From Macrostomum lignano (lineage: Eukaryota), in contig NIVC01003679.1 of NCBI GenBank assembly GCA_002269645.1, positions 19,187 through 83,186 of the forward strand: DNA of 64,000 bases, given 5' to 3'. Below the pieces are notes generated by a model. It had not been told where the DNA came from. It saw only the letters and a program-made list of their open reading frames with translations, and ran no database searches. A program made the translations under genes and the position numbers. Below are positions 42,030 to 64,000 of this stretch, piece after piece; the stretch's first letter is position 1; the number at the start of each line of letters is the position of its first letter.

Positions 42030-43729
42030 TTAGCAGAATCTGCCAATCAAAGCCGCCACAACCGACAGCAGCAGTGTGGCGGGAATCGAAGGAGAGACAA
42101 AACCCACTGAACTGCTCAGGCAGTAGTTCTCCGCCCTGTACGAGCCGACGCAGAGCGAATACTTGATGACATGAGCAATGTACGACTGCTCATGGGTAGC
42201 GTGGAACAGGTGCGACCCGGGACCCGAGCGTAGATGGGGACGTCCTCTGCGGCGTGCGATTCGATTGGAAAATTCACAACAGCTTGCTGCTTGTAGTTTT
42301 CCTGCTCGGTGTCAACATCCGTGATGTTCGCCCGGGGCCGACCGACCGGTGCGCCGGGCCCGTCGCCGTAGAACAGGGGTGTGTAAGGAAGATCGTCGAA
42401 GCCGAGCGCTTCGCCCTTGCTGTTGAACCTATTGAAATAGGAGAACTTCACCTTGCCGAAGATTGGCTGGCCTCTGCGACCCCAGCCTCCGATGGAGAAC
42501 ACGTGACTGTGGTCGGCTGTCACAATTGTCAATGTGTCATCCGGTTTCGTCAACTCGCCAGCCGCCTTGATGGCCTTTTCGAACGCCAAAAGATCGTGCA
42601 TCGACTTCTGCGCCAAGTTTTCATGATGGCCGTGATCAATTCGACCTCCTTCGACAAGCAGAGCGAACCCGTTCGGGTTCTGACTCAAAATCTCAATCGC
42701 CTTTCTCGTCATCTCCTCCAGAGTCGGCTCCTTCCCATCCTTTTGGTTGTCCAGGTCGTAGCGAAGATGGCTCATTGCGAACAGTCCAAAGTATGCAGCG
42801 TTGGGATCCGTCGGAGTGTCTTGCAGCTCCTTGCGAGTCTCCAGGTAGACCGGACGACGTCCATAGCCTTCCTGTCGCTGCTTCCATTTGTTGATGAGGT
42901 TTACCGAGTCGCTTCGGCTTCCGCTGACGTTTCTTCCAGTAATGGGATCGATTGTTATTTCGTTCTTTGGTAGAAACTTCAGCCGACCGCCTCCGAATAT
43001 GACGGTATAGTTGATGGCGTACTCAACCAGCTGCTCGGCAATGTCCGGGCACATCGAACGCTCATTAACATTCGGCACGTCGCTGTTCCTTTCCGTGTCG
43101 TCCTCCCAGTCCCTTGAAGCCGTGTGCGAGTACGCAGCTCCCGGAGTCGCGTGAGTGATCCTTGTGGTGGTGACGATGCCGACCGACTTGCCGAGCTGCT
43201 GAGCCTCATTCAGAAACGACATCACGTTGCGCTCTTTGAGCTGGGAAGTGCAGTTGCGACTAATTACCTGCTCGTTCACTCCCATGGTTCCAGACTTGGC
43301 CTTCACGCCGCACAGGAAGGCGGTGGCCGTCCCGGCGCTGTCCGGAGTCTGCATGTCCGTGTTGTACGTCTTTGAAAGACCAGTGTGTGGGAACCTCTCG
43401 AACTCCAGTATCTCCTCTTCGCCGCTGTTTCCTGCGAGCTGACCTTTGAGGATGCGTCCCACAGTGATCGAAGGCACTCCCATGCCGTCTCCGAGGAAGA
43501 GAATGGCGTTCTTCGCTCTGTTCTCCTTGGTCTGGCGCAAGACGTCAGTAGCGGTCTGCAGGTCCTGCTTGGCTATCTTGGCCCAGTGGCTCGGGTCGGA
43601 GCTCTGCCCTGGCTGCGGTCGAGTCTCCGGCAGCAGCTTGATGAAATCGCCATCCGGAAAGCTTTTGCAAACCGTAGCCAGAAGACTGCCAAGCAGAATG
43701 CTCGCTAAGAAGAACTTTGCTTTCGCCAT
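42030..43729 (-). CDS. ALP: Alkaline phosphatase copy 2 with a 1-nt deletion near the 3' end (566 aa if corrected)
   Basis: Same catalytic motifs as copy 1. Adding one C to CCC at 42223-25 restores ARGPGSHLFHATHEQSYIAH..CLSSSVGFVSPSIPATLLLSVVAALIGRFC* (TAA at 42032-30). Confidence 0.92.
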
Positions 43730-44434: not shown

Positions 44435-45495
44435 ATAATAATAATAGCCACGGGAGTGGCCAAGAGGGGGGAGCGTCAAATCGCGCGTTTCAGAGCTAGG
44501 TCTCTAACGTGCTTCACACCCGGCCGCCTGGCTGGGTGCTCGCGCATCTTCAAAAAGGCGGTCGATGTAGCGGGCTGATCGTCCCTGGCCACGCCTGCGC
44601 GGTCCCTGCGGGGTCCACAACAGGACGTCCTGCAGCGGCTCTGGGCAGTAGGCTTCGGCCCGAATGACATGTCCGGCAAGCCGCAGACGCGGCTGACTCA
44701 GCAGGGCAGAAGGCCGCGTCAGGCCTGTGCGCTTGTACAGGGACTCGGTTGTCTCGCTACCAGGGCCGCGGCGGGCGCCGAAAGCGGCGCGGACTAGGGC
44801 CGCATGCGCCGCATCGAGCTGCGCCCCAAGCGCCCCGGTCAGCGTCCAGGTCTCAGCATTGTACAGCAGGGCGGTCTCAACAACCGCCTGGAACAGCTGG
44901 GACCTGGCGCCGTCGGACAGAGCCTCGGAGAGCAGCAACGCCCGCATAGATCGGAAGGCAGCCCAGGCCTTGCCGCGCCGTCTCGCTAGGTCGTCGCCGA
45001 TGTCCGGCACCAGTCCGCCGAGGTAGACGAACTGAAGGCACTTCGGGAGCGCCGTCCCGGGGCCGTCGCCGTCTCGAAGTCGAATCTCGGCGGGTAGATC
45101 ATGCAGCACCGTCGGCACCTCGGTCTTCCTGGCGTTGAAGACGAGACCGACCCTCGCCGCCGCCGCAGTCAGGCCGTCCAGCAGCCGTTGGGCGCCTTCG
45201 GCCGTCGAAGACAGCAGGGCGAGGTCGTCCGCGTAGCCAAGGACAGACAGTTTCTTCTCCGGGTGCCGTCTACTGGTGCGCCTTTGCAGCAGAAAGCTGT
45301 CCTCTGATGTCGGCAGGCCGGTCCTGAGCACCCAGTCCATCACCAGCACGAAGAGAAAGGGCGCCAGAGTGTCACCCTGTAGCACTCCGGACGTCGTGCT
45401 AAACAGGTCCGACGGTCCGTCTAGCGTCGCTACCGCGGCGGTGGTGTCCTGATACAGCGCCATGATGGCGGCATCGATGAGTTGAAGAGGTAGTT
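44435..45495 (-). mobile_element. 5'-truncated RTE-like non-LTR retrotransposon
   Basis: RT motifs GVLQGDTLAPFLFVLVMD, LGYADDLALL, FVYLG and LLYNAETWTL; (TTA)n 3' tail at 44435-46. TSD not resolved. Confidence 0.88.
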
Positions 45496-45687
45496 TTGGT
45501 AGCCTCTCTATCACAGAAGACGTCCAGAGAGAGGAGCGGATCCATGAGAATGCGCTCATAATTACGGGACAGGTGCGGCCTCTGAGTAGATCTTGGTTTG
45601 AAGCATGAGCTAACAGTCTGTAGCACTGCCGCATATTGTACTATACAAGCTAGGGGTTTTATGGTTTAACAGCGGGATCCCTGGTTA

Positions 45688-49669: not shown

Positions 49670-52130
49670 TTCCCAAACTATAATCTTCACAACTATAATC
49701 TTCACAAACTATAATCTTCACAAACTATAATCTTCACAAACTATAATCTTCACAAACTATAAAATCTTCACAAACTAGAATCTTCACAAACTATAATCTT
49801 CACAAACTATAATCTTCACAAACTATAATCTTCACAGCTATAATCTTCACAAACTATAAAAATCTTCACAAACTATAATCTTCACAAACTATAATCTTCA
49901 CAAACTATAATCTTCACAAACTATAATCTTCACAAACTATAATCTTCACAAACTATAATCTTCACAAACTATAATCTTCACAAACTATAATCTTCACAAA
50001 CTATAATCTTCACAAACTATAATCTTCACAAACTATAATCTTCACAAACTATAATCTTCACAAACTATAATCTTCACAATATAATCTTCACAAACTATAA
50101 TCTTCACAAACTATAATCTTCACAAACTATAATCTTCACAAACTATAATCTTCACAAACTATAATCTTCACAAACTATAATCTTCACAAACTATAATCTT
50201 CAAAACTATAATCTTCACAAACTATAATCTTCACAAACTATAATCTTCACAAACTATAATCTTCACAAACTATAATCTTCACAAACTATAATCTTCACAA
50301 ACTATAATCTAAACTCTTCAAAAACTTCAGAATCTTCAAACTAAATCTTCACAAACTAGAATCTTCACAAACTAATGTATCTCACAAACTATAGAATTTT
50401 CACAAACTAGAAGTGGTATGTCATCACAAACTAGAACTATATTTACAAACTATAAGATTCACCAGCTATAATCTTTACAAGCTAAAATCTTCAGAAACTA
50501 GATTCTTTACAAAGATCTCAGGCAGTATTCTAATTACAAGATTCCAATTTGTGAAGATTCTAGTTTTTGAAGATTCTAGTTGGTGAATATTCTAGTTTTT
50601 GAAGATTCTAGTTGGTGAATATTCTAGTTTTTGAAGATTCTAGTTGCTTCTAGTTGGTGAAGATTCTAGTTGGTGAAGATTCTAGTTTGTGAGGATTCTA
50701 TAGTTTGTGAAGACTCTAGTTTGTGAGGATTCTATAGTTTGTGAAGATTCTAGTTTGTGAGGATTCTATAGTTTGTGAAGATTCTAGTTTTTAAAGATTC
50801 TAGTTGGTGAAGATTCTAGTTTGTGAAGATTCTAGTTTGTGAGGATTCTATAGTTTGTGAAGACTCTAGTTTGTGAAGATTCTAGTTTGTGAGGATTCTA
50901 TAGTTTGTGAAGATTCTAGTTTTTGAAGATTCTAGTTTTTGAAGATTCTAGTTGGTGAAGATTCTAGTTTGTGAAGATTCTAGTTTGTGAAGATTCTAGT
51001 TGGTGAAGTTCTAGAAGATTCTAGTTGTGAAGATTCTAGTAAGTTCTAGTTGTGAAGATTCTAGTTTGTGAAGATTCTAGTTTGTGAAGATTCTAGTTTG
51101 TGAAGATTCTAGTTTGTGAAGATTCTAGTTTGTGAAGATTCTAGTTTGTGAAGATTCTAGTTTGTGAAGATTATAGTTTGTGAAGATTCTAGTTTGTGAA
51201 GATTCTAGTTTGTGAAGATTCTAGTTTGTGAGGATTCTAGTTTGTGAAGATTCTAGTTTGTGAGGATTCTAGTTTGTGAAGATTAGTTTGTGACATTCTA
51301 GTTTGTGAAGATTCTAGTTTGTGAAGATTCTAGTTTGTGAAGATTCTAGTTTGTGAAGATTCTAGTTTGTGAAGATTCTAGTTTGTGAAGATTCTAGTTT
51401 GTGAAGATTCTAGTTTGTGAAGATTCTAGTTTGTGAAGATTCTAGTTTGTGAAGATTCTAGTTTGTGAGGATTCTATAGTTTGTGAAGATTCTAGTTTGT
51501 GAAGATTCTATAGTTTGTGAAGATTCTAGTTTGTGAAGATTCTAGTTTGTGAAGATTCTAGTTTGTGAAGATTCTAGTTTGTGAAGATTCTAGTTTGTGA
51601 AGATTCTAGTTGTGAAGATTCTAGTTGGTGAAGATTCTAGTTTTTGGTTGGTGAAGATTCTAGTTTGTGAAGATTCTATAGTTTGTGAAGATTCTAGTTT
51701 GTGAGGATTCTAGTTTGTGAGGATTCTATAGTTTGTGAAGATTCTAGTTTTTGAAGATTCTAGTTGGTGAAGATTCTAGTTGGTGAAGATTCTAGTTTGT
51801 GAAGATTCTAGTTTGTGAAGATTCTAGTTTGTGAAGATTCTATGGTTTGTGAGGATTCTAGTTTGTGAAGATTCTAGTTTGTGAGGATTCTATAGTTTGT
51901 GAAGACTCTAGAAGATTCTAGTTTGTGAAGATTCTAGTTTGTGAAGATTCTAGTTTGTGAGGATTCTATAGTTTGTGAAGATTCTAGTTTGTGAGGATTC
52001 TATAGTTTTTGAAGATTCTAGTTTTTGAAGATTCTAGTTTGTGAAGATTCTAGTTTGTGAAGATTCTAGTTTGTGAAGATTCTAGTTTGGGAAGATTCTA
52101 TGGTTTGTGAAGATTCCATAGCTTGTGAAT
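49670..52130. repeat. Two inverted arrays of a 16-bp satellite (CTATAATCTTCACAAA, then TTTGTGAAGATTCTAG)
   Basis: The left array runs to ~50500; the orientation flips near 50520-50550; the right array runs to ~52130. Confidence 0.93.
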
Positions 52131-52729
52131 ATTCTAGTAGATTCATCTAGTTGCCATAATTGTGGTTGGAACTTGCTTTCCAGATGGTCATCAGTGGCGT
52201 TCAGATGGAGAAATTTGATGCAATGAAGTGTTGAGAAGCCGAGCTGTCAGTCTTGTGATTGCAGTTTGCTGCGCAGCTATTTAAAAACACTGCGTTTGCA
52301 AAGTGTGTACAAATTAGAGTTTATTCATACACAGGCAAAATATGCAATAAACATAAGAGGGTTCATATCTGTTGCATGTTTACACCGCTGAGTTATCGGA
52401 TAAAAATATGTATATTATATAAAAATAATAAATATATAACATAGGAACAGATAAGCCGGAGGCAAAGTAAGGTGCGCGCAAGGCAGAAAAGGACCAGGGG
52501 GCAAATCAGACACAAAGCCGAACTGTAAGCATGTACCAGCCTAATTAATTGCACAGTCCGCTAGAGCCCTGCTAACTAGAGAGAGGTCTGACAGAGACAG
52601 AAATTGCGACTTGTTGCCAACAGAAGAAAAACGAGCTGCAAAGTTAAGAGGGAAACAAACCAGCTAAACTGAAGCTGAACGGGTCTGAATTTTAATACCA
52701 TAAATACTTGCTTGTTAAAAAAGAGCGGG

Positions 52730-54010
52730 CGGAGAGAGTGTGGCAAAGAGTGTGGCAGAGAGCGGAGAGATAGTGACAGAGGGTGGTGGGAGTGTGACAG
52801 AGGGCTGAGAGAGCGGGGCAGAGGGCGGAGAGAGTGTGACAGAGGGCGGAGAGAGAGAGTGACAGAGAGCGGAGAGAGTGACAGAGGGCGGAGAGAGTGT
52901 GACAGAGGGCGGAGAGAGTGTGACAGAGGGCGGAGAGAGAGAGTGACAGAGAGCGGAGAGAGTGACAGAGAGCGGAGAGAGTGACAGAGGGCGGAGAGAG
53001 TGGGGCAGAGGGCGGAGAGAGAGAGTGACAGAGAGCGGAGAGAGAGTGACAGAGCGGAGAGAGTGTGACAGAGGGCGGAGAGAGTGGGGCAGAGGGTGGA
53101 GAGAGAGTGACAGAGAGCGGAGAGAGTGTGACAGTGAGCGGAGAGAGTGTGACAGAGAGCGGAGAGAGAGTGACAGAGAGCGGAGAGAGTGTGACAAAGA
53201 GCGGAGAGAGTGTGACAGAGAGCGGAGAGAGAGTGACAGAGAGCGGAGAGAGAGTGACAGAGAGCGGAGAGAGTGTGACAAAGAGCGGAGAGAGAGAGAC
53301 AGAGAGCGGAGAGAGTGACAGAGAGCGGAGAGAGAGAGCGGACAGAGAGCGGAGAGAGTGACAGAGAGCGGAGAGAGAGTGACAGAGAGCGGAGAGAGTG
53401 ACAGAGAGCGGAGAGAGTGACAGTGAGAGAGAGCGGAGAGAGTGACAGAGAGCGGAGAGAGTGACAGAGAGCGGAGAGAGAGAGTGACAGAGAGCGGAGA
53501 GAGTGACAGAGAGCGGAGAGAGTGACAGAGAGCGGAGAGAGTGGGGCAGAGAGCGGAGAGAGCGTGACAGAGAGCGGAGAGAGAGAGAGCGGACAGAGAG
53601 CGGAGAGAGTGACAGAGAGCGGAGAGAGAGTGACAGAGAGCGGAGAGAGTGACAGAGAGCGGAGAGAGTGACAGAGAGCGGAGAGAGTGGGGCAGAGAGC
53701 GGAGAGAGTGACAGAGAGCGGAGAGTGGAGAGAGCGGAGAGAGTGTGGCAGAGAGCGGAGAGAGTGTGGCAGAGAGCGGAGGAGTGTGACAGAGAGCGGA
53801 GAGAGTGTGACAGAGCGGAGAGAGTGTGACAGAGCGGTGGAGAGAGTGTGGAGAGAGTGGGCAGAGAGCGGAGGAGAGTGTGACAGAGAGCGGAGAGAGT
53901 GACAGAGAGCGCGGAGAGAGAGTGACAGAGAGCGGACAGAGAGTGACAAAGAGCGGAGAGAGTGTGACAGTGAGCGAAGAGGCAGAAGGCGGAGAGAGTG
54001 ACAGGGCAGT
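52730..54010 (+). repeat. GA-rich 18-20-bp minisatellite (GAGAGCGGAGAGAGTGACA)n
   Basis: About 65 copies; source of the long spurious ORFs at 52576-54176. Confidence 0.93.
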
Positions 54011-54400: not shown

Positions 54401-57022
54401 CTATCGATAACCATAGTAGTCCATGTACCTGTAGGAGTTTGCGGCCAGCAACGCGCTGGCCAGGGCCTGCGACTTGCGTGAGCGGCGCAGCGCCAGGCGA
54501 GTGATGCGCGCCCTCTGGCGCTCCAGCTTCTCCTCCTGGCGGCGCTGCTCTTCCTTCCTCTTGAGCCAGCTGGCGGGGTGGGGGGGTTCGGGATGGACTA
54601 GGATTCGAACTCTGGACTGTGCCACCAGCGCTTTTAACTCTGTGAACTAACCAGAGTAACTGACCTCAGGTTACCTTGAGGTGGCTAATTACAGATGGGT
54701 AACTTCAGGTGGGTAATCTCAGGTGGGTAACCTCAGGTGGGTAACCTCAGGTGGGTAACCTCAGGTGGGTAATCTCAGGTGGTTAACCTCAGGTGCGTAA
54801 CTTCAGGTGGGTAATCTCAGGTGGGTAACCTCAAGTGGGTAGCCTCAGGTGGGTAATCTCAGGTAGGGATTACGCAGCTGCTGGCGACTCGCCGAGACGT
54901 GTCAGCCCTCCAGGGGTCAGCAGAACGGGGGCTCCAGGACCTCCCTTGCTCCAGGCCCGCGACTCACCTCCTGAATGCCTTGCGACACTCCTCCGGCGAG
55001 TGGATCGCCTCAGGCGGCGGGTCTTCTTCCGTCCGCCGCCGCTGCTGCAGGTCGGCCTCGCGGCGGAGCTGCGCCCGCTTCGCCTCCAGCCAGCGCTCGA
55101 AGCTGACGCCGTCGCGCTCGGCCGCTGCGTCCCGGCGCCGATCAGTCTCGGCGCGGCGCGCCGCCTCCGCTCGGCGCTGCTCCGCCTCCGACTGTTGCCG
55201 CTTGCGGATCAGCCAGGCCTGGAAGGCGGCCTCGCTGTCCTCCGCCTTCGAGCCGCCGCCGCCGCCAGATGTTGAGGCGGACGACTTTCGCCCGCTGCCA
55301 CCGCGTTCCCGACGCTTCTTGGCCAGCCAGGCCTGGAAGGCGGCCTCGTTCTCCTCGCGGCTGTGCTGCTGCTGCGGCTGCTGCAGCTCGAGCCTCTGCT
55401 GCTCCTCCTGCTGCTGCTGCCTGCTGAAGGAGGCCTGCGGGGCGCTGGTCGGCCGAGCGGCCGCCTGCTGCCGGTTCTTCCGGCGCTGGGACTGCGGCTG
55501 CTGCTGCGCCTGCGGTTGCCGGCGGGACTCGGAGGCGGCGGCTGATTTCGGGCGCCGACTTGCCGGCCTGGGCGACGGCGAGTTCTTCGCCTCGAAGTCG
55601 GAGCTGTCGACGAACCGAATCCGACCGCCGTTTACAACGACAACCTTCTGTGATGCTTCTTTCTCTTGCTGCGGCTTCTGCTGTTGTTGCTGCTCAGCAG
55701 TGGTGGCGGGAGGCAATCTGGAAGGTGGTGCTTCATCAACATCGTCTTGGTTGGCGGCCGGTTGCGGCATTTCGCCCAGCCCGTCCGCATCGCCACTTTC
55801 TTGCTGCTGCTGCTGCTGCTGTTCCTCTTCACTGTCCTCCTCCTCGTCGCTCGTGTCCTCGTGCAGCTCACCAGCCGGCGGCTCGGGCTCGGGCGCCACG
55901 CTGACGAGATTCTCGCTGAAGCAGATTCGCGTCGGCCTACGCTGGGCCTCCATCTCTGGCAGCGGCTCGCTCTCCAGCTGGGCGTTCAGCTCGTCGATGC
56001 GCGCCCGGGTGACCTCGTAGTCCGGGGGCGGCTCTGCGGCCGGGCGGGTTGGAGGAGAATCGTTTGCGATGTGCAGCTTCACCTTTAATGATTAGCTTTT
56101 AACGTTTTCGGTTTAAATTCTCCGAAAATTGCCTTGGCCGTCATCATGGATTTTATGGTGAGGGGGCAAAGCCAAGAATTCTACCATGAATAAAGTCCTA
56201 TATTTTTTGGCGCCGCAGACACTCATTTCGGCGCCGCAGACACTCATTTCGGCGCCGCAGACACTCATTTCGGCGCCGCAGACACTCATTTCGGCGCCGC
56301 AGACACTCATTTCGGCGCCGCAGACACTCATTTCGGCGCCGCAGACACTCATTTCGGCGCCGCAGACGATTATTGCGGCGCCCTGAAGCAAAATTGTTGA
56401 TTTCCATAACGGGGTCACAAGGTGGGGCGGAGGGGACAAACCATTGGCATGTCCCCCATAGCTTTCACTTGGGGGACATCTCCCCCTGTCCCTTGTGGCG
56501 ACGCCCCTGACTATTTCTTGGAATTACACTGAGAGGATATGGAAACTGCCGTGCCTCTCTGTTTAACGTTCTCAAAATACTTGAAAAAAGCTTCCACGAG
56601 TACATCAAGGAGCTGAGTAGCTCACAGCAGTAATGCAACGGGTTTGTCTTGCATCTCGTGCCCATGAGGGCCAACCCCTCAAAGCTGAAGCTGAAAATCA
56701 TATCTAATTCTAGTTTTGCTACCGCTATGATCCTGCTCGACCTCTGCTCGAGACCGGATCGACTCGCAGACTCACCCATGAGCAGCTGCAAGAACTCCGC
56801 GTCCTTTTCCTCTGCAATGCGGAATTGCGGGGTGCGGGGCGGCGGTGCTCAAAATGCGATGAAAATCTTAAAAAATTCAAATGTAAGTCGCACGCAGCCA
56901 AGGAAGCGCTACTCACCGTTCCAGTCCTCCGGCCTGGTGCTCTGCAGCCGCTCGAGCTCCGCCATGGCGGCGCGCTGATCGTCTCGCATGCCGAAGTCGT
57001 CGGACTCTCCGGTCTGCGGCAT
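54401..57022 (-). CDS. CCDC181: Coiled-coil domain-containing protein 181-like (~496 aa)
   Basis: Main exon 56082-54968 and last exon 54569-54401 are in frame. Repeated AFxxWLxxK motifs (ENEAAFQAWLAKK, SEAAFQAWLIRK, SFERWLEAK, KAFRSWLKRK), RARIDELNAQL..ICFSENLV and VVVNGGRIRF resemble CCDC181 as I recall it. The 5' exons 57022-56917, 56811-56776 and 56690-56626 are tentative. Confidence 0.8.
54660..54866 (+). repeat. 14-bp minisatellite (CTCAGGTGGGTAAC)n in the last CCDC181 intron
   Basis: About 13 copies. Confidence 0.9.
56208..56367 (+). repeat. 21-bp minisatellite (CGGCGCCGCAGACACTCATTT)n in a CCDC181 intron
   Basis: About 7.5 perfect copies. Confidence 0.93.
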
Positions 57023-58510: not shown

Positions 58511-61399
58511 TTAATCTGAGTCACTGGAACCGCCACCTGATTTTGAATTTGGCTTTGATGCCGACTTCCGAGAGCCTGATTTGAAGCTATCACCGGATGA
58601 CTGCCTAGATCGGTCATCTCGAGACTTGGCAGACTGTCTTTTAATTTTAACTTGATGCTGACCATGAGCGTCCTTCTGTTTCACATCGGCCTGTACTTGA
58701 TTCCGCTTTTGTGAATCATCCCCAGCATTGAATTGAAGTTGGATGCCACCTGAGGCATGCGATTTCTCATCCGATTGCTGATTTGCTGGTACCACCACTG
58801 GCCGTTCAACTTGCACAGCACCTGGCTGTACAGAAACAAAAACACCTGGTTGCCCAGCGGGTACAACATGTGGTTCCTGACTTTGCGGTGCTTCAACTGG
58901 TTTTTCCTCAAGATGTGGATCTTTTTCAGCTGGTGGTTCTTCGTCAGCTGGTGGTTCTTCAGCTGGTGGTTCTTCAGCTGGTGGTTCTTCAGCCGGTGGT
59001 TCTTCAGCTGGTGGTTCTTCAGCTGGTGGTTCTTCAGCTGGTGGTTCTTCAGCTGGTGGTTCTTCAGCTGGTGGTTCTTCTTCAGCTGGTGGTTCTTCAG
59101 CTGGTGGTTCTTCAGCTGGTGGTTCTTCAGCTGGTGGTTCTTCAGCTGGTGGTTCTTCAGCTGGTGGTTCTTCAGCTGGTGGTTCTTCAGCTGGTGGTTC
59201 TTCAGCTGGTGGTTCTTCAGCTGGTGGTTCTTCAGCTGGTGGTTCTTGGGCTGGTGGCTCTTCAGCCGGTGGCTCTTCAGCTGGCGGCTCTTCAGCAGGA
59301 GGTTCCTCAATGGGTGGTTCTTCTTCAGCTGATGGTTCCTCCACTGGAGCTTCACCTATAGTCGCGGCATCAGCTCCTTCAGCTCCACCAGACCTAGAGA
59401 TTGAAACTGCAGCTGCTCCAGCCCCCTTCCTTCCATTCCCGCGACTTTTCTCTTTGTCTGGTTGGTCTGGATGCTCAGGATGCTCAGGGTGCTCAGGATG
59501 TTCCGGGTGTGCTGGATGCCTGCAAAAGAGCGTACTCGTACTTTAAACTACAAGTATAAAGCCATGGTCACTTTTCAAAAAATAAATTTCTATTAAAATC
59601 TCACCCTTTCCGTTGCATCTCTTCTTTTGTAGTCTGAATCAGCTGATTGATGTCAGTTAAAAGAATCGCGGCAAACTCTGAAGAGAAATCAATTGAATGC
59701 ACAAACTAGACCAGCCTATATTCTTACTCGAACTTTTATTTTGCGTACAAATGCAATGCAAGCAAGGTGTTCTTGCGCACTAAAATTCACCTTCATAGTC
59801 GATACGGCCGTCTCCGTTCTTGTCCACAGCGCTGAGCAGTTCGTCGAACTCCTCCTCGGAAAGCTCCACCGGCCCCATGCTGTAGATGGCGTCGCGCAGC
59901 TCCTCCCGGTCCAAGTAGCCGCTCTGGTCTTTGTCAAACACCTGGAAGCTGCTCACCAGCTGCTGGCGCACGTCCGCCTCCGGCTTGCAAAGACGCGACA
60001 TCAGCGAGGCGAATTCCACAAATTCCACGCTGCCGCTGGCGTCCGTGTCGCTCTCCGACAGCATCTGCTGGATTTCCTCCTGGCTTTCCGGTGCCTGGTG
60101 GAAGTCATGGATTGTTGGCGTTGGTTGGTCAGGTTTTCGGGGACAACTTCAGACAGAAGAGAGAGAATTACGAATATCCGTAACCTGAGCACACCCACAC
60201 GCTAGGCTACGAGCATAGGTAAGCTCCAACTGCACTCTCACCTGGCCTGAAACCTGCAGACAACTGTAAAGCTCTCCGGCATCGATGCTGTTGGATCTAT
60301 CCGCGTCGAATAGCTTGAATGTACGATAGTACTTCTTCGCTTCCTCCGCCGACACGCCCGCTGCTGAAAGCGCCTCGTGGTAGTGCTCCGGCACTTCAAA
60401 GCTGTTCGTCCCTTCCTGGAAGCGGATTCGCGTCGGCCTACGCTGGGTCTCCTCCTCCGGCAGCGGCTCGATCTCCAGCTGGGCGTTCAGCTCGTCGATG
60501 CGCGCCCGGGTGACCTCGTAGTCCGGGGCGGCTCTGCGGTCGGGCGGGGTGAGGGGAGAATTGATGGCGATGTGGAGCTTCACTTTTAATCCCTAGTGTT
60601 TTTACTTTTCCTAATTTCCTTTAATAAAATTATAATAAAATCATAAAATCATATCTAATCTTCGTTTTGTTATCGCTATGATCCTGCTTGACCTCCTGTT
60701 CCCATCACCTTTCTCACCTGCTTCTTCAGCTGCTTCTTCGGCTGCTTCAGCTGCTTCTTCAGCTGCTTCAGCTGCTTCTTCAGCTGCTTCTTCAGCTGCT
60801 TCAGCTGCTTCTTCGGCTGCTTCACCTGCTTCTTCAGCTGCTTCAGCTGCTTCAGCTGCTTCTTCAGCTGCTTCAGCTGCTTCACCTGTTTCTTCAGCTG
60901 CTTCTTCAGCTGCTTCACCTGCTTCTTCAGCTGCTTCTTCGGCTGCTTCTTTAGCCGCTTCACCTGCTTCTTCACCTGCTTCTTCAGCTGCTTCTTCGGC
61001 TGCTTCATCTGCTTCTTCAGCTGCTTCTTCGGCTATTTCACCTGCTTCTTCAGCCGCTTCACCTGCTTCTTCAGCTGCTTCTTCAGCTGCTTTATCTGCT
61101 TCTTCTGCTGCTTCAGCTGCTTCTTCAGCTGCTTCACCTGTTTCTTCAGCTGCTTCTTCAGCTGCTTCACCTGTTTCTTCAGCTGCTTCTTCAGCTGCTT
61201 CACCTGTTTCTTCAGCTGCTTCTTCAGCTGCTTCACCTGTTTCTTCAGCTGCTTCTTCAGCTGCTTCACCTGTTTCTTCAGCTGATTCTTCAGCTGCTTC
61301 AGCTGCTTCATCTGCTGCTTCACCCGCTTCTTCGGCTGCTCCTTCGGTTGCTTCTTCAACTGCTGTTTCTTGAGCAGCTTCCACTGCTTCTCCGTCCAT
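58511..61399 (-). CDS. 802-aa acidic chimeric protein: E/A repeat, CCDC181-derived segment, calmodulin-like four-EF-hand domain, (EEPPA)n tail
   Basis: Exons 61399-60718, 60582-60242, 60094-59791, 59677-59605 and 59519-58511 total 2409 nt and give one open frame through GT..AG junctions. EF loops DADRSNSIDAGE, DTDASGSVEFVE, DKDQSGYLDREE and DKNGDGRIDYEE. Confidence 0.85.
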
Positions 61400-62011: not shown

Positions 62012-62737
62012 TCACTGCTGATTGCCTCGACGATTCCTACTACGCGACGCTGTTGGCAGCGCTGGAAGGCCGACAGTTTTCATCGGCTGGTCGGGAGCGC
62101 TCGGCAGGTCCACGATAACCGCGGCGGGGGCGGCGGTCACTCGGCCGTGGCCGCAGCTGTAGCGCGAGTAGAGCTGCTGACGGATTCTCGGTCCGGTGCG
62201 GCTGAACAGCTCCCAGCCGGTGAGCTGCTGCTGTTGCTGGGGCTTAGCAATCCGGACAGATAGGTCGTCTTTCTGTTGCGCCGCCTGCACCACGCGGCCC
62301 AGGTTCTGCCTCAGCAGATGCCAGCGTCGGCGGGCTCGAAGCTGCTGATACCTGAGCTGCTGCTGCTGCACTCCGGGACTCTTCTTAACGCTGCAGCTCT
62401 CCGTGCCATCCGGACCCGTCGATGCCGTCGCCGCCGTCGCCGCTGCCTCCGGCGCCTCTGCAGCCTCCTGCCGCTTGGCCCGCAGGCGAGTTTCAATCAG
62501 AGCGCTTCGGAAATTCCGGCTAAAGTTCTGCCAGAGGACGCTGCCGCCGGTGCCGACGCCGCTGCCAGCCGCTCCGAAATCCTCCGACGGTTTACTGATC
62601 CCATTGTCAATGGCCGAGCTCTGCTGCTGTTCAGGCAGCTCTAGCAGCCGATGCAGTTGGTGGTGCTGCCGCCACTGATGATGATTCGGCTTTCTGCCAT
62701 GCCCAGCAGAGCTCAGCCGCAGATGCTGCTGTTGCAT
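62012..62737 (-). CDS. Uncharacterised 241-aa Q/A-rich protein (single ORF)
   Basis: ATG-initiated GC-rich ORF with composition like the neighbouring genes; no family recognised. Confidence 0.55.
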   Translation of the reverse strand: MQQQHLRLSSAGHGRKPNHHQWRQHHQLHRLLELPEQQQSSAIDNGISKPSEDFGAAGSGVGTGGSVLWQNFSRNFRSALIETRLRAKRQEAAEAPEAAATAATASTGPDGTESCSVKKSPGVQQQQLRYQQLRARRRWHLLRQNLGRVVQAAQQKDDLSVRIAKPQQQQQLTGWELFSRTGPRIRQQLYSRYSCGHGRVTAAPAAVIVDLPSAPDQPMKTVGLPALPTASRSRNRRGNQQ

Positions 62738-63364: not shown

Positions 63365-64000
63365 TCGGAATACGGAGACTCAGGATTGTGAGATTCGGAA
63401 ATTCAGGATTGTAGGATTCGGAAACTCGGGATTGTACTCGTAGGATTCGGAAACTCGGGATTGTGGGATTCGGAAACTCGGGATTGTAGGATTCGGAAAC
63501 TCAGGATTGTAGGATTCGGAAACTCGGGATTGTGGGATTCGGAAACTCAGGATTGTAGGATTCGGAAACTCAGGATTGTAGGATTCGGAAATTCAGGATT
63601 GTAGGATTCGGAAATTCAGGATTGTAGGATTCGGAAATTCAGGATTGTAGGATTCGGAAATTCAGGATTGTAGGATTCGGAAATTCAGGATTGTAGGATT
63701 CGGAAATTCAGGATTGTAGGATTCGGAAACTCAGGATTGTGAGATTCGGAAATTCAGGATTGTAGGATTCGGAAATTCAGGATTGTGGGATTCGGAATTC
63801 AGGATTGTAGGATTCGGAAATTCAGGATTGTGGATTTGAAATTCAGGATTGTGGGATTTGGAAATTCAGAATTTTACATGTCTGATTCAGAAATTCTGGA
63901 TTGCAGGATTCGAAATTCATGATTGCAGTACTGCTGATTGCAGGATTGTAGGATTGGAAATTCGGATTTAGGATTCGGAAATTAAGGATCGTATAATTCG
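63365..64000 (+). repeat. 23-bp minisatellite (GGATTGTAGGATTCGGAAATTCA)n, running off the right edge
   Basis: About 25 copies. Confidence 0.92.

Follow-up and report, generated by a model that had tools for sequence, protein, structure and literature searches.

Macrostomum lignano, a free-living flatworm, carries on the minus strand of one 64-kb stretch of its DNA (the window, meaning the whole stretch that was analyzed) both a homologue of CCDC181 and a chimeric gene in which a partial copy of this CCDC181 gene abuts a calmodulin-like EF-hand coding sequence. The structure of the DNA is chimeric, and the transfer ran from CCDC181 to the EF-hand gene. Judged from its sequence, the locus (58511-61399) is a young, lineage-specific chimeric gene of M. 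lignano, and there is good support for a predicted acidic calmodulin-like product with a selected (EEPPA)n arm. The best protein matches of the candidate exons were UniProt and NCBI entries of this species. Chimera formation by partial duplication is a known kind of event; this member is undescribed. A sequence-only reading of the window had proposed that a CCDC181 duplication was captured by a calmodulin-like gene. The partial copy adjoining in frame, the direction of transfer and the existence of an unfused EF-hand paralogue bear out this proposal, whereas the single open reading frame (ORF) that it assumed depends on a weak splice acceptor.

A partial copy of CCDC181 adjoins an EF-hand gene

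The parent CCDC181 gene spans 54401-57022 on the minus strand, 1.5 kb downstream of the chimera, with exons at 57022-56917, 56811-56776, 56033-54968 and 54569-54401. In the alignment it is 96% identical to the UniProt entry 'CCDC181' (P0016). The Pfam family CCDC34 (PF13904) scored 32.9 bits on the parent, under the cut-off of 35, and is carried by P0016. The parent had no match in the PDB. In P0016 and three paralogues (34-44% identical), '...FLQLLM' or '...LLM' is spliced to 'EP.PDYE' ('EPPPDYEV' in P0016). Because these proteins share this junction, the main exon of the parent must start at 56033, behind the acceptor ccgcag/AG (a slash marks the exon boundary).

Comparison of the chimeric locus with the parent gene revealed two duplicated blocks. 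Positions 60419-60590 match 55918-56089 with 90.8% identity over 173 nt (E ~1e-63) and with sharp edges, in agreement with the nucleotide copy noted earlier. The second block, 60645-60695, is 88% identical to 56694-56744 in the 5' part of CCDC181 intron 2, confirming that intron sequence was copied too. Altogether the duplicated DNA amounts to ~280 bp and comprises both ends of intron 2, its acceptor and the beginning of exon 3 (116 nt). The parent promoter and the first two CCDC181 exons are not among the copied DNA, and beyond the two blocks no further copy of any module was found in the 64-kb window.

The larger block is composite. Its 3' portion on the minus strand (60419-60533) corresponds to the initial 116 nt of CCDC181 exon 3 (94.8% identity to 55918-56033) and encodes (A)APDYEVTRARIDELNAQLEIEPLPEEETQRRPTRIRF. 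The remainder (60534-60590) derives from the 3' end of intron 2. It is 85.7% identical to 56034-56089, with one T insertion, and holds the acceptor chosen in the sequence-only reading (exon start 60582) together with the ancestral acceptor, polypyrimidine tract and AG included. The earlier description of this block as copied from the beginning of the main exon is thus accurate as to the copy; about one-third of it is intron, since the parent exon starts at 56033 and not at 56082. The segment 56034-56082, which had been read as 'VKLHIANDSPPTRPAA', is CCDC181 intron, and the string PTRPAAEPP, taken for CCDC181 protein, is intron-derived save for its last residues. Within the exonic part, the C run at 60525-60528 has four residues (C4) in the copy and five (C5) in the parent. 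Divergence from the parent amounts to 12-14% in the intron-derived blocks and to 5% in the exonic block, and much of this gap could be due to constraint acting solely on the parent.

The fusion breakpoint lies at 60418/60419, where the CCDC181 motif is cut after RIRF. The native CCDC181 frame runs on into the EF-hand frame over this point, and the frame of exon 2 is open from 60592 to 60152. The conserved N-terminal motif of CCDC181 is EP.PDYE.T.ARL.QLNA.LE.EP.P...R[IV]RFSENLVQVAP. CCDC181 paralogues with no more than 34-44% identity have kept the part of it that was copied, and the direction of transfer was therefore from CCDC181 to the EF-hand gene. Two parental sequences can be identified: CCDC181 next door, in which the motif is ancient, and an EF-hand paralogue that starts at the breakpoint.

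We considered whether the duplication and its junction might be a mis-join in a repeat-rich polyploid genome. Satellites flank the region, two minisatellites lie inside it, and assemblies of this species are known as difficult. However, the copies differ by 5-14% and by indels, the breakpoints are sharp, and all exons have clean ORFs and splice sites, leaving only the repeat-array lengths and the C4 run at risk. Moreover, the junction peptide RRPTRIRFQEGT(D/N)SFEVPEHY occurs in two UniProt gene models from a different assembly, A0A1I8FI97 (P0002) and A0A1I8F511 (P0023). Because RRPTRIRFQEGT is present in both, the fusion is not a local mis-assembly, a danger that had been named at the outset; as an explanation of the locus, an assembly artefact is very improbable.

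Several observations concern the parent rather than the fusion. Relative to P0016 and the paralogues, the window CCDC181 carries two residue changes in 55918-56033 (EEE to EME and RIRF to RICF), while the captured copy retains the ancestral EEE and RIRF. Intron 2 of the parent (56090-56693) contains ~550 nt that are absent from the copy, including a 21-nt tandem repeat at 56205-56382 (8.5 copies, 96% matches). Either the parent gained these ~550 nt after the duplication or the copy lost them; no inverted repeats of a miniature inverted-repeat transposable element (MITE) were found in them. No pre-fusion arrangement was seen beside other CCDC181 paralogues, the P0019 loci having no EF-hand neighbor.

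The captured piece was next considered for function. CCDC181 is a protein of sperm flagella and motile cilia, and the sequence-only reading had suggested a possible ciliary or sperm targeting segment, a suggestion that did not hold up. The captured coding sequence amounts to only 38 residues of an N-terminal motif that is cut short. The chimera retains 'PDYEVTRARIDELNAQLE.EPLPE...RRPTRIRF' of this motif, at 95% nucleotide identity, and differs from CCDC181 in lacking SENLVQVAP, the motif being replaced after RIRF by sequence of the EF-hand gene. It also lacks the C-terminal CCDC34-like region with its F..WL..K repeats, which binds HOOK1 in the mouse (PMC11491787), and PF13904 had no match in the 802-residue model. 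In mouse CCDC181, the HOOK1-binding segment (residues 393-448) and the sole predicted domain (337-494) are both C-terminal (PMC11491787). In an AlphaFold2 (AF2) model, the predicted local distance difference test (pLDDT) score of the captured segment was under 50 for the most part; the segment had a single short helix and did not dock confidently. Given the truncated motif, the C-terminal position of the functional regions, the low AF2 confidence and the lack of a PDB match to the parent, we rejected a CCDC181 targeting module. Since the C-terminal region, the promoter and the first two exons were not copied, there is no basis for ciliary or sperm targeting or for testis expression, and the fusion has no bearing on cilia or sperm biology.

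The EF-hand domain and its unfused paralogue

The five-exon, 802-residue frame proposed from the sequence was reproduced exactly, with GT..AG at all four introns. Junctions 2-3, 3-4 and 4-5 recur in UniProt models, whereas junction 1-2 depends on a weak acceptor. The EF-hand part of exon 2 (60242-60418, minus strand) encodes an N-terminal helix and EF-hand 1, and exon 3 (59791-60094, minus strand) encodes EF-hands 2 and 3 together with EF-hand 4 as far as a split codon. The rest of EF-hand 4 (DYE/EFAAIL, where the slash marks the intron) and a C-terminal helix are encoded by exon 4 (59605-59677, minus strand). The junctions of exon 3 are found in UniProt models. A0A1I8HPY9 (P0001; 97% identical) independently has junctions 3-4 and 4-5, and P0002 and P0023 have junctions 2-3 and 3-4 in addition to the fusion peptide. 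Support is good for exons 3-4-5 and for the acidic C-terminal arm.

As had been claimed, the 802-residue model contains four EF-hand loops, at residues 320, 357, 395 and 432 (DADRSNSIDAGE, DTDASGSVEFVE, DKDQSGYLDREE and DKNGDGRIDYEE). Measured against the canonical 12-residue Ca2+ loop pattern (D at position 1, D/N/S at 3 and 5, G at 6, a hydrophobic residue at 8 and E at 12), three of the four are fully canonical, and EF-hand 1 departs from it with N at position 6. Pfam PF13499 (EF-hand_7) matched in two stretches with E 5e-29 and 100.8 bits (cut-off 30), and EF-hand_1, _5, _6 and _8 were likewise over their Pfam cut-offs. The closest solved relatives over the whole domain and all four sites are calmodulins (E 1e-27 to 1e-29). 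AF2 predicted, with moderate confidence, the eight EF helices of four hands and an additional C-terminal helix. This predicted four-site EF-hand Ca2+-binding domain would be the working part of the product.

We rejected a calmodulin orthologue as the identity of the EF-hand gene, the closest relatives outside Macrostomum being 31-39% identical. Like calmodulin and calmodulin-like proteins, the chimera has four EF-hands in two pairs; unlike calmodulin, it has added N-terminal and C-terminal helices and several hundred low-complexity acidic residues, and its identity to calmodulin-like matches is only ~30-39%.

An exhaustive search identified an unfused M. lignano paralogue, Mlig028917 (PAA88635.1; BOX15_Mlig028917g1-g4), in four copies. 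The chimera aligns with it at 55% identity without gaps over 173 residues, from residue 7 of Mlig028917 onward in the exon 2 part. The two share four EF-hands and the extra C-terminal helix (TDI..I.T.K), the phase-1 intron at DY./EF and a basic Ser/Arg-rich C-terminal tail. In contrast to the chimera, Mlig028917 (228 residues) has its own ATG behind a long contiguous 5' untranslated region (UTR) and lies at another locus with other neighbors. It is devoid of the CCDC181 segment, the Glu/Ala-rich (E/A) exon, (HPE)n and (EEPPA)n, and its C-terminal exon has no intron. Met1 of Mlig028917 aligns within a few residues of the breakpoint (MAAVSAVPEQYY compared to ..TNSFEVPEHYH), and an ACG stands in the chimera near the position aligned to the paralogue's ATG. 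No in-frame ATG occurs from the breakpoint to Met351 in exon 3. Because Met1 of the paralogue aligns near the breakpoint and the chimera has no in-frame ATG before Met351, the chimera must have lost its own 5' end.

Acidic repeat tracts and the 5' end of the reading frame

Both acidic repeat tracts described in the sequence-only reading exist. Exon 5 (58511-59519, minus strand) encodes (HPE)n, a linker, (EEPPA)n (58925-59323; 15-nt period, 26 copies) and a basic Ser/Lys/Arg tail, and ends with a stop at 58511-58513. Its frame is open for 343 codons, non-repetitive flanks included, and ATTAAA follows 101 nt past the stop. Candidate exon 1 (60718-61399, minus strand) is an E/A-rich ORF of 227 codons built on a 33-nt minisatellite (60718-61364). 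It opens with an ATG at 61399-61397 in the context AAAATGG, with an in-frame stop 4 codons upstream, and ends at the region's only consensus donor (GCAG/GTGAGA). This donor is in phase 1, the phase that the CCDC181 acceptor expects. Extra consensus donors within the E/A repeat were sought and rejected: only the single GT[GA]AG exists, besides 13 weaker GTGAA sites, all in phase 1. The 802-residue model as a whole has 233 D+E and 53 K+R, an isoelectric point (pI) of 4.05 and a basic tail.

Variation among repeat units is mostly synonymous in these frames, strongly for (EEPPA)n and moderately for E/A. Of the single-step variants of (EEPPA)n, 11 were synonymous and 2 non-synonymous (P=7.7e-6 against an expected synonymous fraction of 0.24), and of those of E/A, 10 and 9, respectively (P=0.005); note that the tests treat unit variants as independent, whereas units are copied with their variants, so that the P values are optimistic although the direction is clear. 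The alternative open frame of (EEPPA)n gave 1 synonymous to 10 non-synonymous, and the E/A array read in the K/Q frame gave 3 to 16 plus a stop. The GC content at third codon positions (GC3) of the acidic frames is 0.06-0.07, versus 0.68-0.84 in confident exons, as would be expected of young minisatellites. The K/Q frame of exon 1 and the KNHQL frame of exon 5 had been suggested as coding by a GC3 of 0.95-1.0 that matches the genome preference; they were ruled out by the variant pattern and the stop codon. Both minisatellites have the core CAGCTGAAGAA, with a GC3 of ~0.06 in the coding-like frame and near 1.0 in the alternative (KNHQL/KQLK). The disordered polyanionic arms are probably extended low-affinity cation-binding or spacer segments.

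How exon 1 might be joined to exon 2 turns on the splice acceptors. The acceptor of the sequence-only reading (exon start 60582) reads aaaag/TG, and the tract before it is rich in purines (pyrimidine fraction 0.27). The pyrimidine fraction is 0.50-0.77 at six supported acceptors of the two genes, every one of which ends in CAG, the enriched cis-acceptor motif in M. lignano (PMC8629364). The ancestral acceptor is intact in the copy 49 nt farther downstream (ccgcag/AG, exon start 60533, pyrimidine fraction 0.77). With C4, its use leads to a stop at codon 243; with C5, it would yield an intact 786-residue ORF. A full scan returned seven in-frame AGs, including gcagAG/CC at 60531, 2 nt past the ancestral site (785 residues). 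The start codon and the E/A exon are in frame with exon 2 only through the weak sites 60582 or 60531, or if the run is C5.

The copy had also been credited with a compensated frameshift. Two 1-nt indels do exist, the T insertion in the intron-derived part and the C5-to-C4 deletion just past the ancestral acceptor. When the parent intron carrying the C deletion was evolved neutrally in simulations, 37-84% of runs produced an upstream AG that was in frame and stop-free, and the unmodified parent intron with C4 already has two of them. The compensation is not significant, and we rejected it as a sign of selection.

We favor, tentatively, the reading in which a single protein comprises the E/A arm, the CCDC181 piece and the EF-hand domain. 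A calmodulin-like gene has lost its 5' end and start, the CCDC181 partial copy now lies directly upstream and in frame, and the minisatellite-encoded acidic ORF, with its good ATG and phase-1 consensus donor, would serve as the upstream exon. The gene may have been born as one in-frame ORF via the inherited CCDC181 acceptor, whose frame a later C5-to-C4 deletion would have shifted. Unless C4 is an assembly error, full-length protein (~785-802 residues, pI ~4) would now require splicing to a minor acceptor in the right frame, either 60582 or 60531, a tandem AG. The CCDC181 piece would not be a targeting domain; mostly disordered, it would bridge the parts on either side and contribute a splice acceptor and reading frame. 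In the last exon, the 15-nt minisatellite encoding (EEPPA)26 has expanded and is under purifying selection. Supporting a single protein, the CCDC181 frame continues into the EF-hand frame, C5 with the ancestral acceptor would restore a 786-residue ORF, the E/A ORF has a favorable ATG context and a synonymous excess in its own frame only, EF-hands 1 and 2 are still canonical though no ATG lies between the breakpoint and Met351, the two in-frame acceptors (60582 and 60531) belong to the same intron, and two UniProt models from the other assembly connect the E/A region to exon 2.

Several points weigh against it, in addition to the optimistic P values. The two acceptors that do best in local comparison and against the published CAG or [T/C]TNCAG motif, 60533 and 60415, would each put the E/A exon out of frame, whereas 60582 is an AAG behind purines and 60531 a GAG located 2 nt after a CAG. 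The two UniProt models that connect the E/A region to exon 2 use two different acceptors, neither of them the one at 60582. Their frames are full of 1-nt shifts, and they may lack a transcript basis, making them poor evidence for reading frames. P0002 also implies C4, contrary to a simple sequence error. Finally, the codon usage of exon 1 (GC3 0.06) is unlike that of exons 2-3 (0.73).

That both strong acceptors are out of frame speaks for a rival arrangement of two cistrons. The EF-hand mRNA would be trans-spliced to a spliced leader (SL) and start at an SL-donated ATG, giving a ~520-residue protein (MEGTNSFEVPEHY...) that has the acidic C-terminal arm and lacks the N-terminal one. The CCDC181 piece would be a non-coding outron, providing acceptor context at most, and the E/A ORF a separate 252-residue cistron or an upstream ORF (uORF). 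The SL of M. lignano (CGGTCTCTTACTGCGAAGACTCAATTTATTGCATG) ends in ATG, 30-39% of genes are trans-spliced, and the acceptor motif is [T/C]TNCAG (PMC8629364). At the breakpoint, TTCCAG (60416-60421, minus strand) fits this motif, and the exon behind it would begin at 60415, in phase 0 relative to the EF-hand frame. An SL ATG joined there opens a 520-residue ORF beginning MEGTNSFEVPEHYHEAL, with no stop before the conserved domain and with an N-terminus that agrees with that of the paralogue in length and position. Its predicted N-terminal peptide is MEGTNSFEVPEHYHEALSAAGVSAEEAK or the des-Met form. The CAG sites 60478 and 60442 would serve an SL-ATG ORF as well. Left unspliced, the E/A ORF has 252 residues. 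ATTAAA occurs 15 and 50 nt past its stop codon (60641-60643), ~90-200 nt before the candidate acceptors. About 7% of assembled M. lignano transcripts are polycistronic precursors, and P0023, which spans a 241-residue upstream ORF, the E/A region and the EF exons, resembles one.

In flatworms, use of the 3' AUG of the SL as initiator is documented in schistosomes. The chimera resembles such mRNAs in having an ORF without its own ATG, a motif-matching phase-0 acceptor and an SL ATG in frame; it differs in having a cis donor upstream and a paralogue that does not use the mechanism. The consensus cis donor at 60717, if part of the same primary transcript, would normally favor cis- over trans-splicing (rule quoted in PMC8629364), and the paralogue's own ATG and long contiguous 5' UTR leave no room for trans-splicing next to the ATG. 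The TTCCAG motif and its phase could be fortuitous, with an estimated probability of ~0.04-0.15 for such a site within the relevant 60 nt. SL addition at the strongest acceptor, 60533, would give a dead-end ORF of 32 codons. Under two cistrons, the continuity of the CCDC181 and EF-hand frames and the phase-1 match of the E/A donor would both be coincidences. We regard this arrangement as possible but doubtful.

The same acceptor strengths and frame break also fit a decaying 5' end. Here C4 would be real and the dominant splice would run from 60718 to 60533, with a stop at codon 243, so that most transcripts would be unproductive. The EF product would start at Met351 without EF-hand 1, or the locus would be a pseudogene in the making. 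C4 is implied in P0002 too, P0001 begins MLSESD (Met351 in exon 3), and the 'compensated' frame is explained by chance. M. lignano is a hidden polyploid with redundant copies (PMC10468722), of which the paralogues have three to four, and this redundancy would relax constraint. However, strong purifying selection on (EEPPA)n implies that exon 5 is translated, EF-hands 1 and 2 are canonical, and exon 2 is open over its full length. A Met351 product would leave EF-hand 2 unpaired, and re-initiation after a uORF of 242 codons is unlikely. Decay of the 5' end is therefore an unlikely account of the locus.

A combination of cis- and trans-splicing appears less likely again. The TTC of CCDC181 and the CAG of the EF-hand gene would have created or kept an SL acceptor at the breakpoint, with the SL AUG replacing the lost start. 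The cis route would add a 230-residue polyanionic arm and exonised CCDC181 sequence, and competition between trans- and cis-splicing would yield short and long Ca2+-binding proteins.

Comparison with known chimeric genes and neighboring sequence

Chimeric genes from the partial duplication of neighbors include Drosophila Sdic (AnnX plus Cdic) and jingwei. As in these cases, a fragment of one gene is set against another and the recipient's 5' end is replaced, the new 5' exon contains or borders on ex-intron sequence, and an intact parent remains next door. Unlike them, the present chimera captured only 38 codons and an intron remnant, the parent promoter and first exons were not copied, and the inherited acceptor is out of frame as assembled. 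If expressed, the locus would offer a datable case of a partial duplication giving rise to a gene, in a flatworm model that is amenable to transgenesis and with both parents extant (CCDC181 next door and the unfused EF-hand paralogue elsewhere). It would be a case of a gene minus its start codon that depends for translation on captured sequence or on an SL AUG, and of minisatellites that now encode long acidic arms, on which purifying selection has already left its mark.

There is also a practical warning in the public models. A0A1I8F511, A0A1I8FI97 and A0A1I8HPY9 are frame-shifted fragments or merged genes; their frames change at apparent 1-nt homopolymer deletions every ~60-100 nt, or they are truncated inside repeats, and the protein is misrepresented by them. 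A 241-residue ORF at 62012-62737 (minus strand), 600 nt upstream of the E/A ORF, is merged with the EF-hand exons in P0023, which suggests a polycistronic precursor or a merged annotation. This ORF had no Pfam match, and the homology search returned no homologue of it. A further UniProt model, P0021, fuses CCDC181, a WD-repeat gene and reverse transcriptase (RT) sequence.

A 376-residue ORF at 44504-45634 (minus strand) with an RVT_1 domain (E 1.6e-10) resembles the sequence at the end of P0021 and is probably a retroelement fragment. At 42116-43729 (minus strand) lies an unbroken alkaline phosphatase ORF of 537 residues (Pfam PF00245, E 1.7e-121); an exact look-up of its product in the contig collection found no gene recorded. 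Exact look-ups for other genomic copies via the 241-residue ORF, the alkaline phosphatase ORF and P0023 gave no match, and ARAGORN detected no element of tRNA origin within the final CCDC181 intron. The two genes are set among four arrays of satellite or minisatellite repeats: a 16-nt unit repeated 70 times (51014-52138), a 21/42-nt unit over ~1.2 kb (52747-54004), a 14-nt unit repeated 12 times in the last CCDC181 intron (54692-54864) and a 23-nt unit repeated 27 times that continues past the window end (63373-64000).

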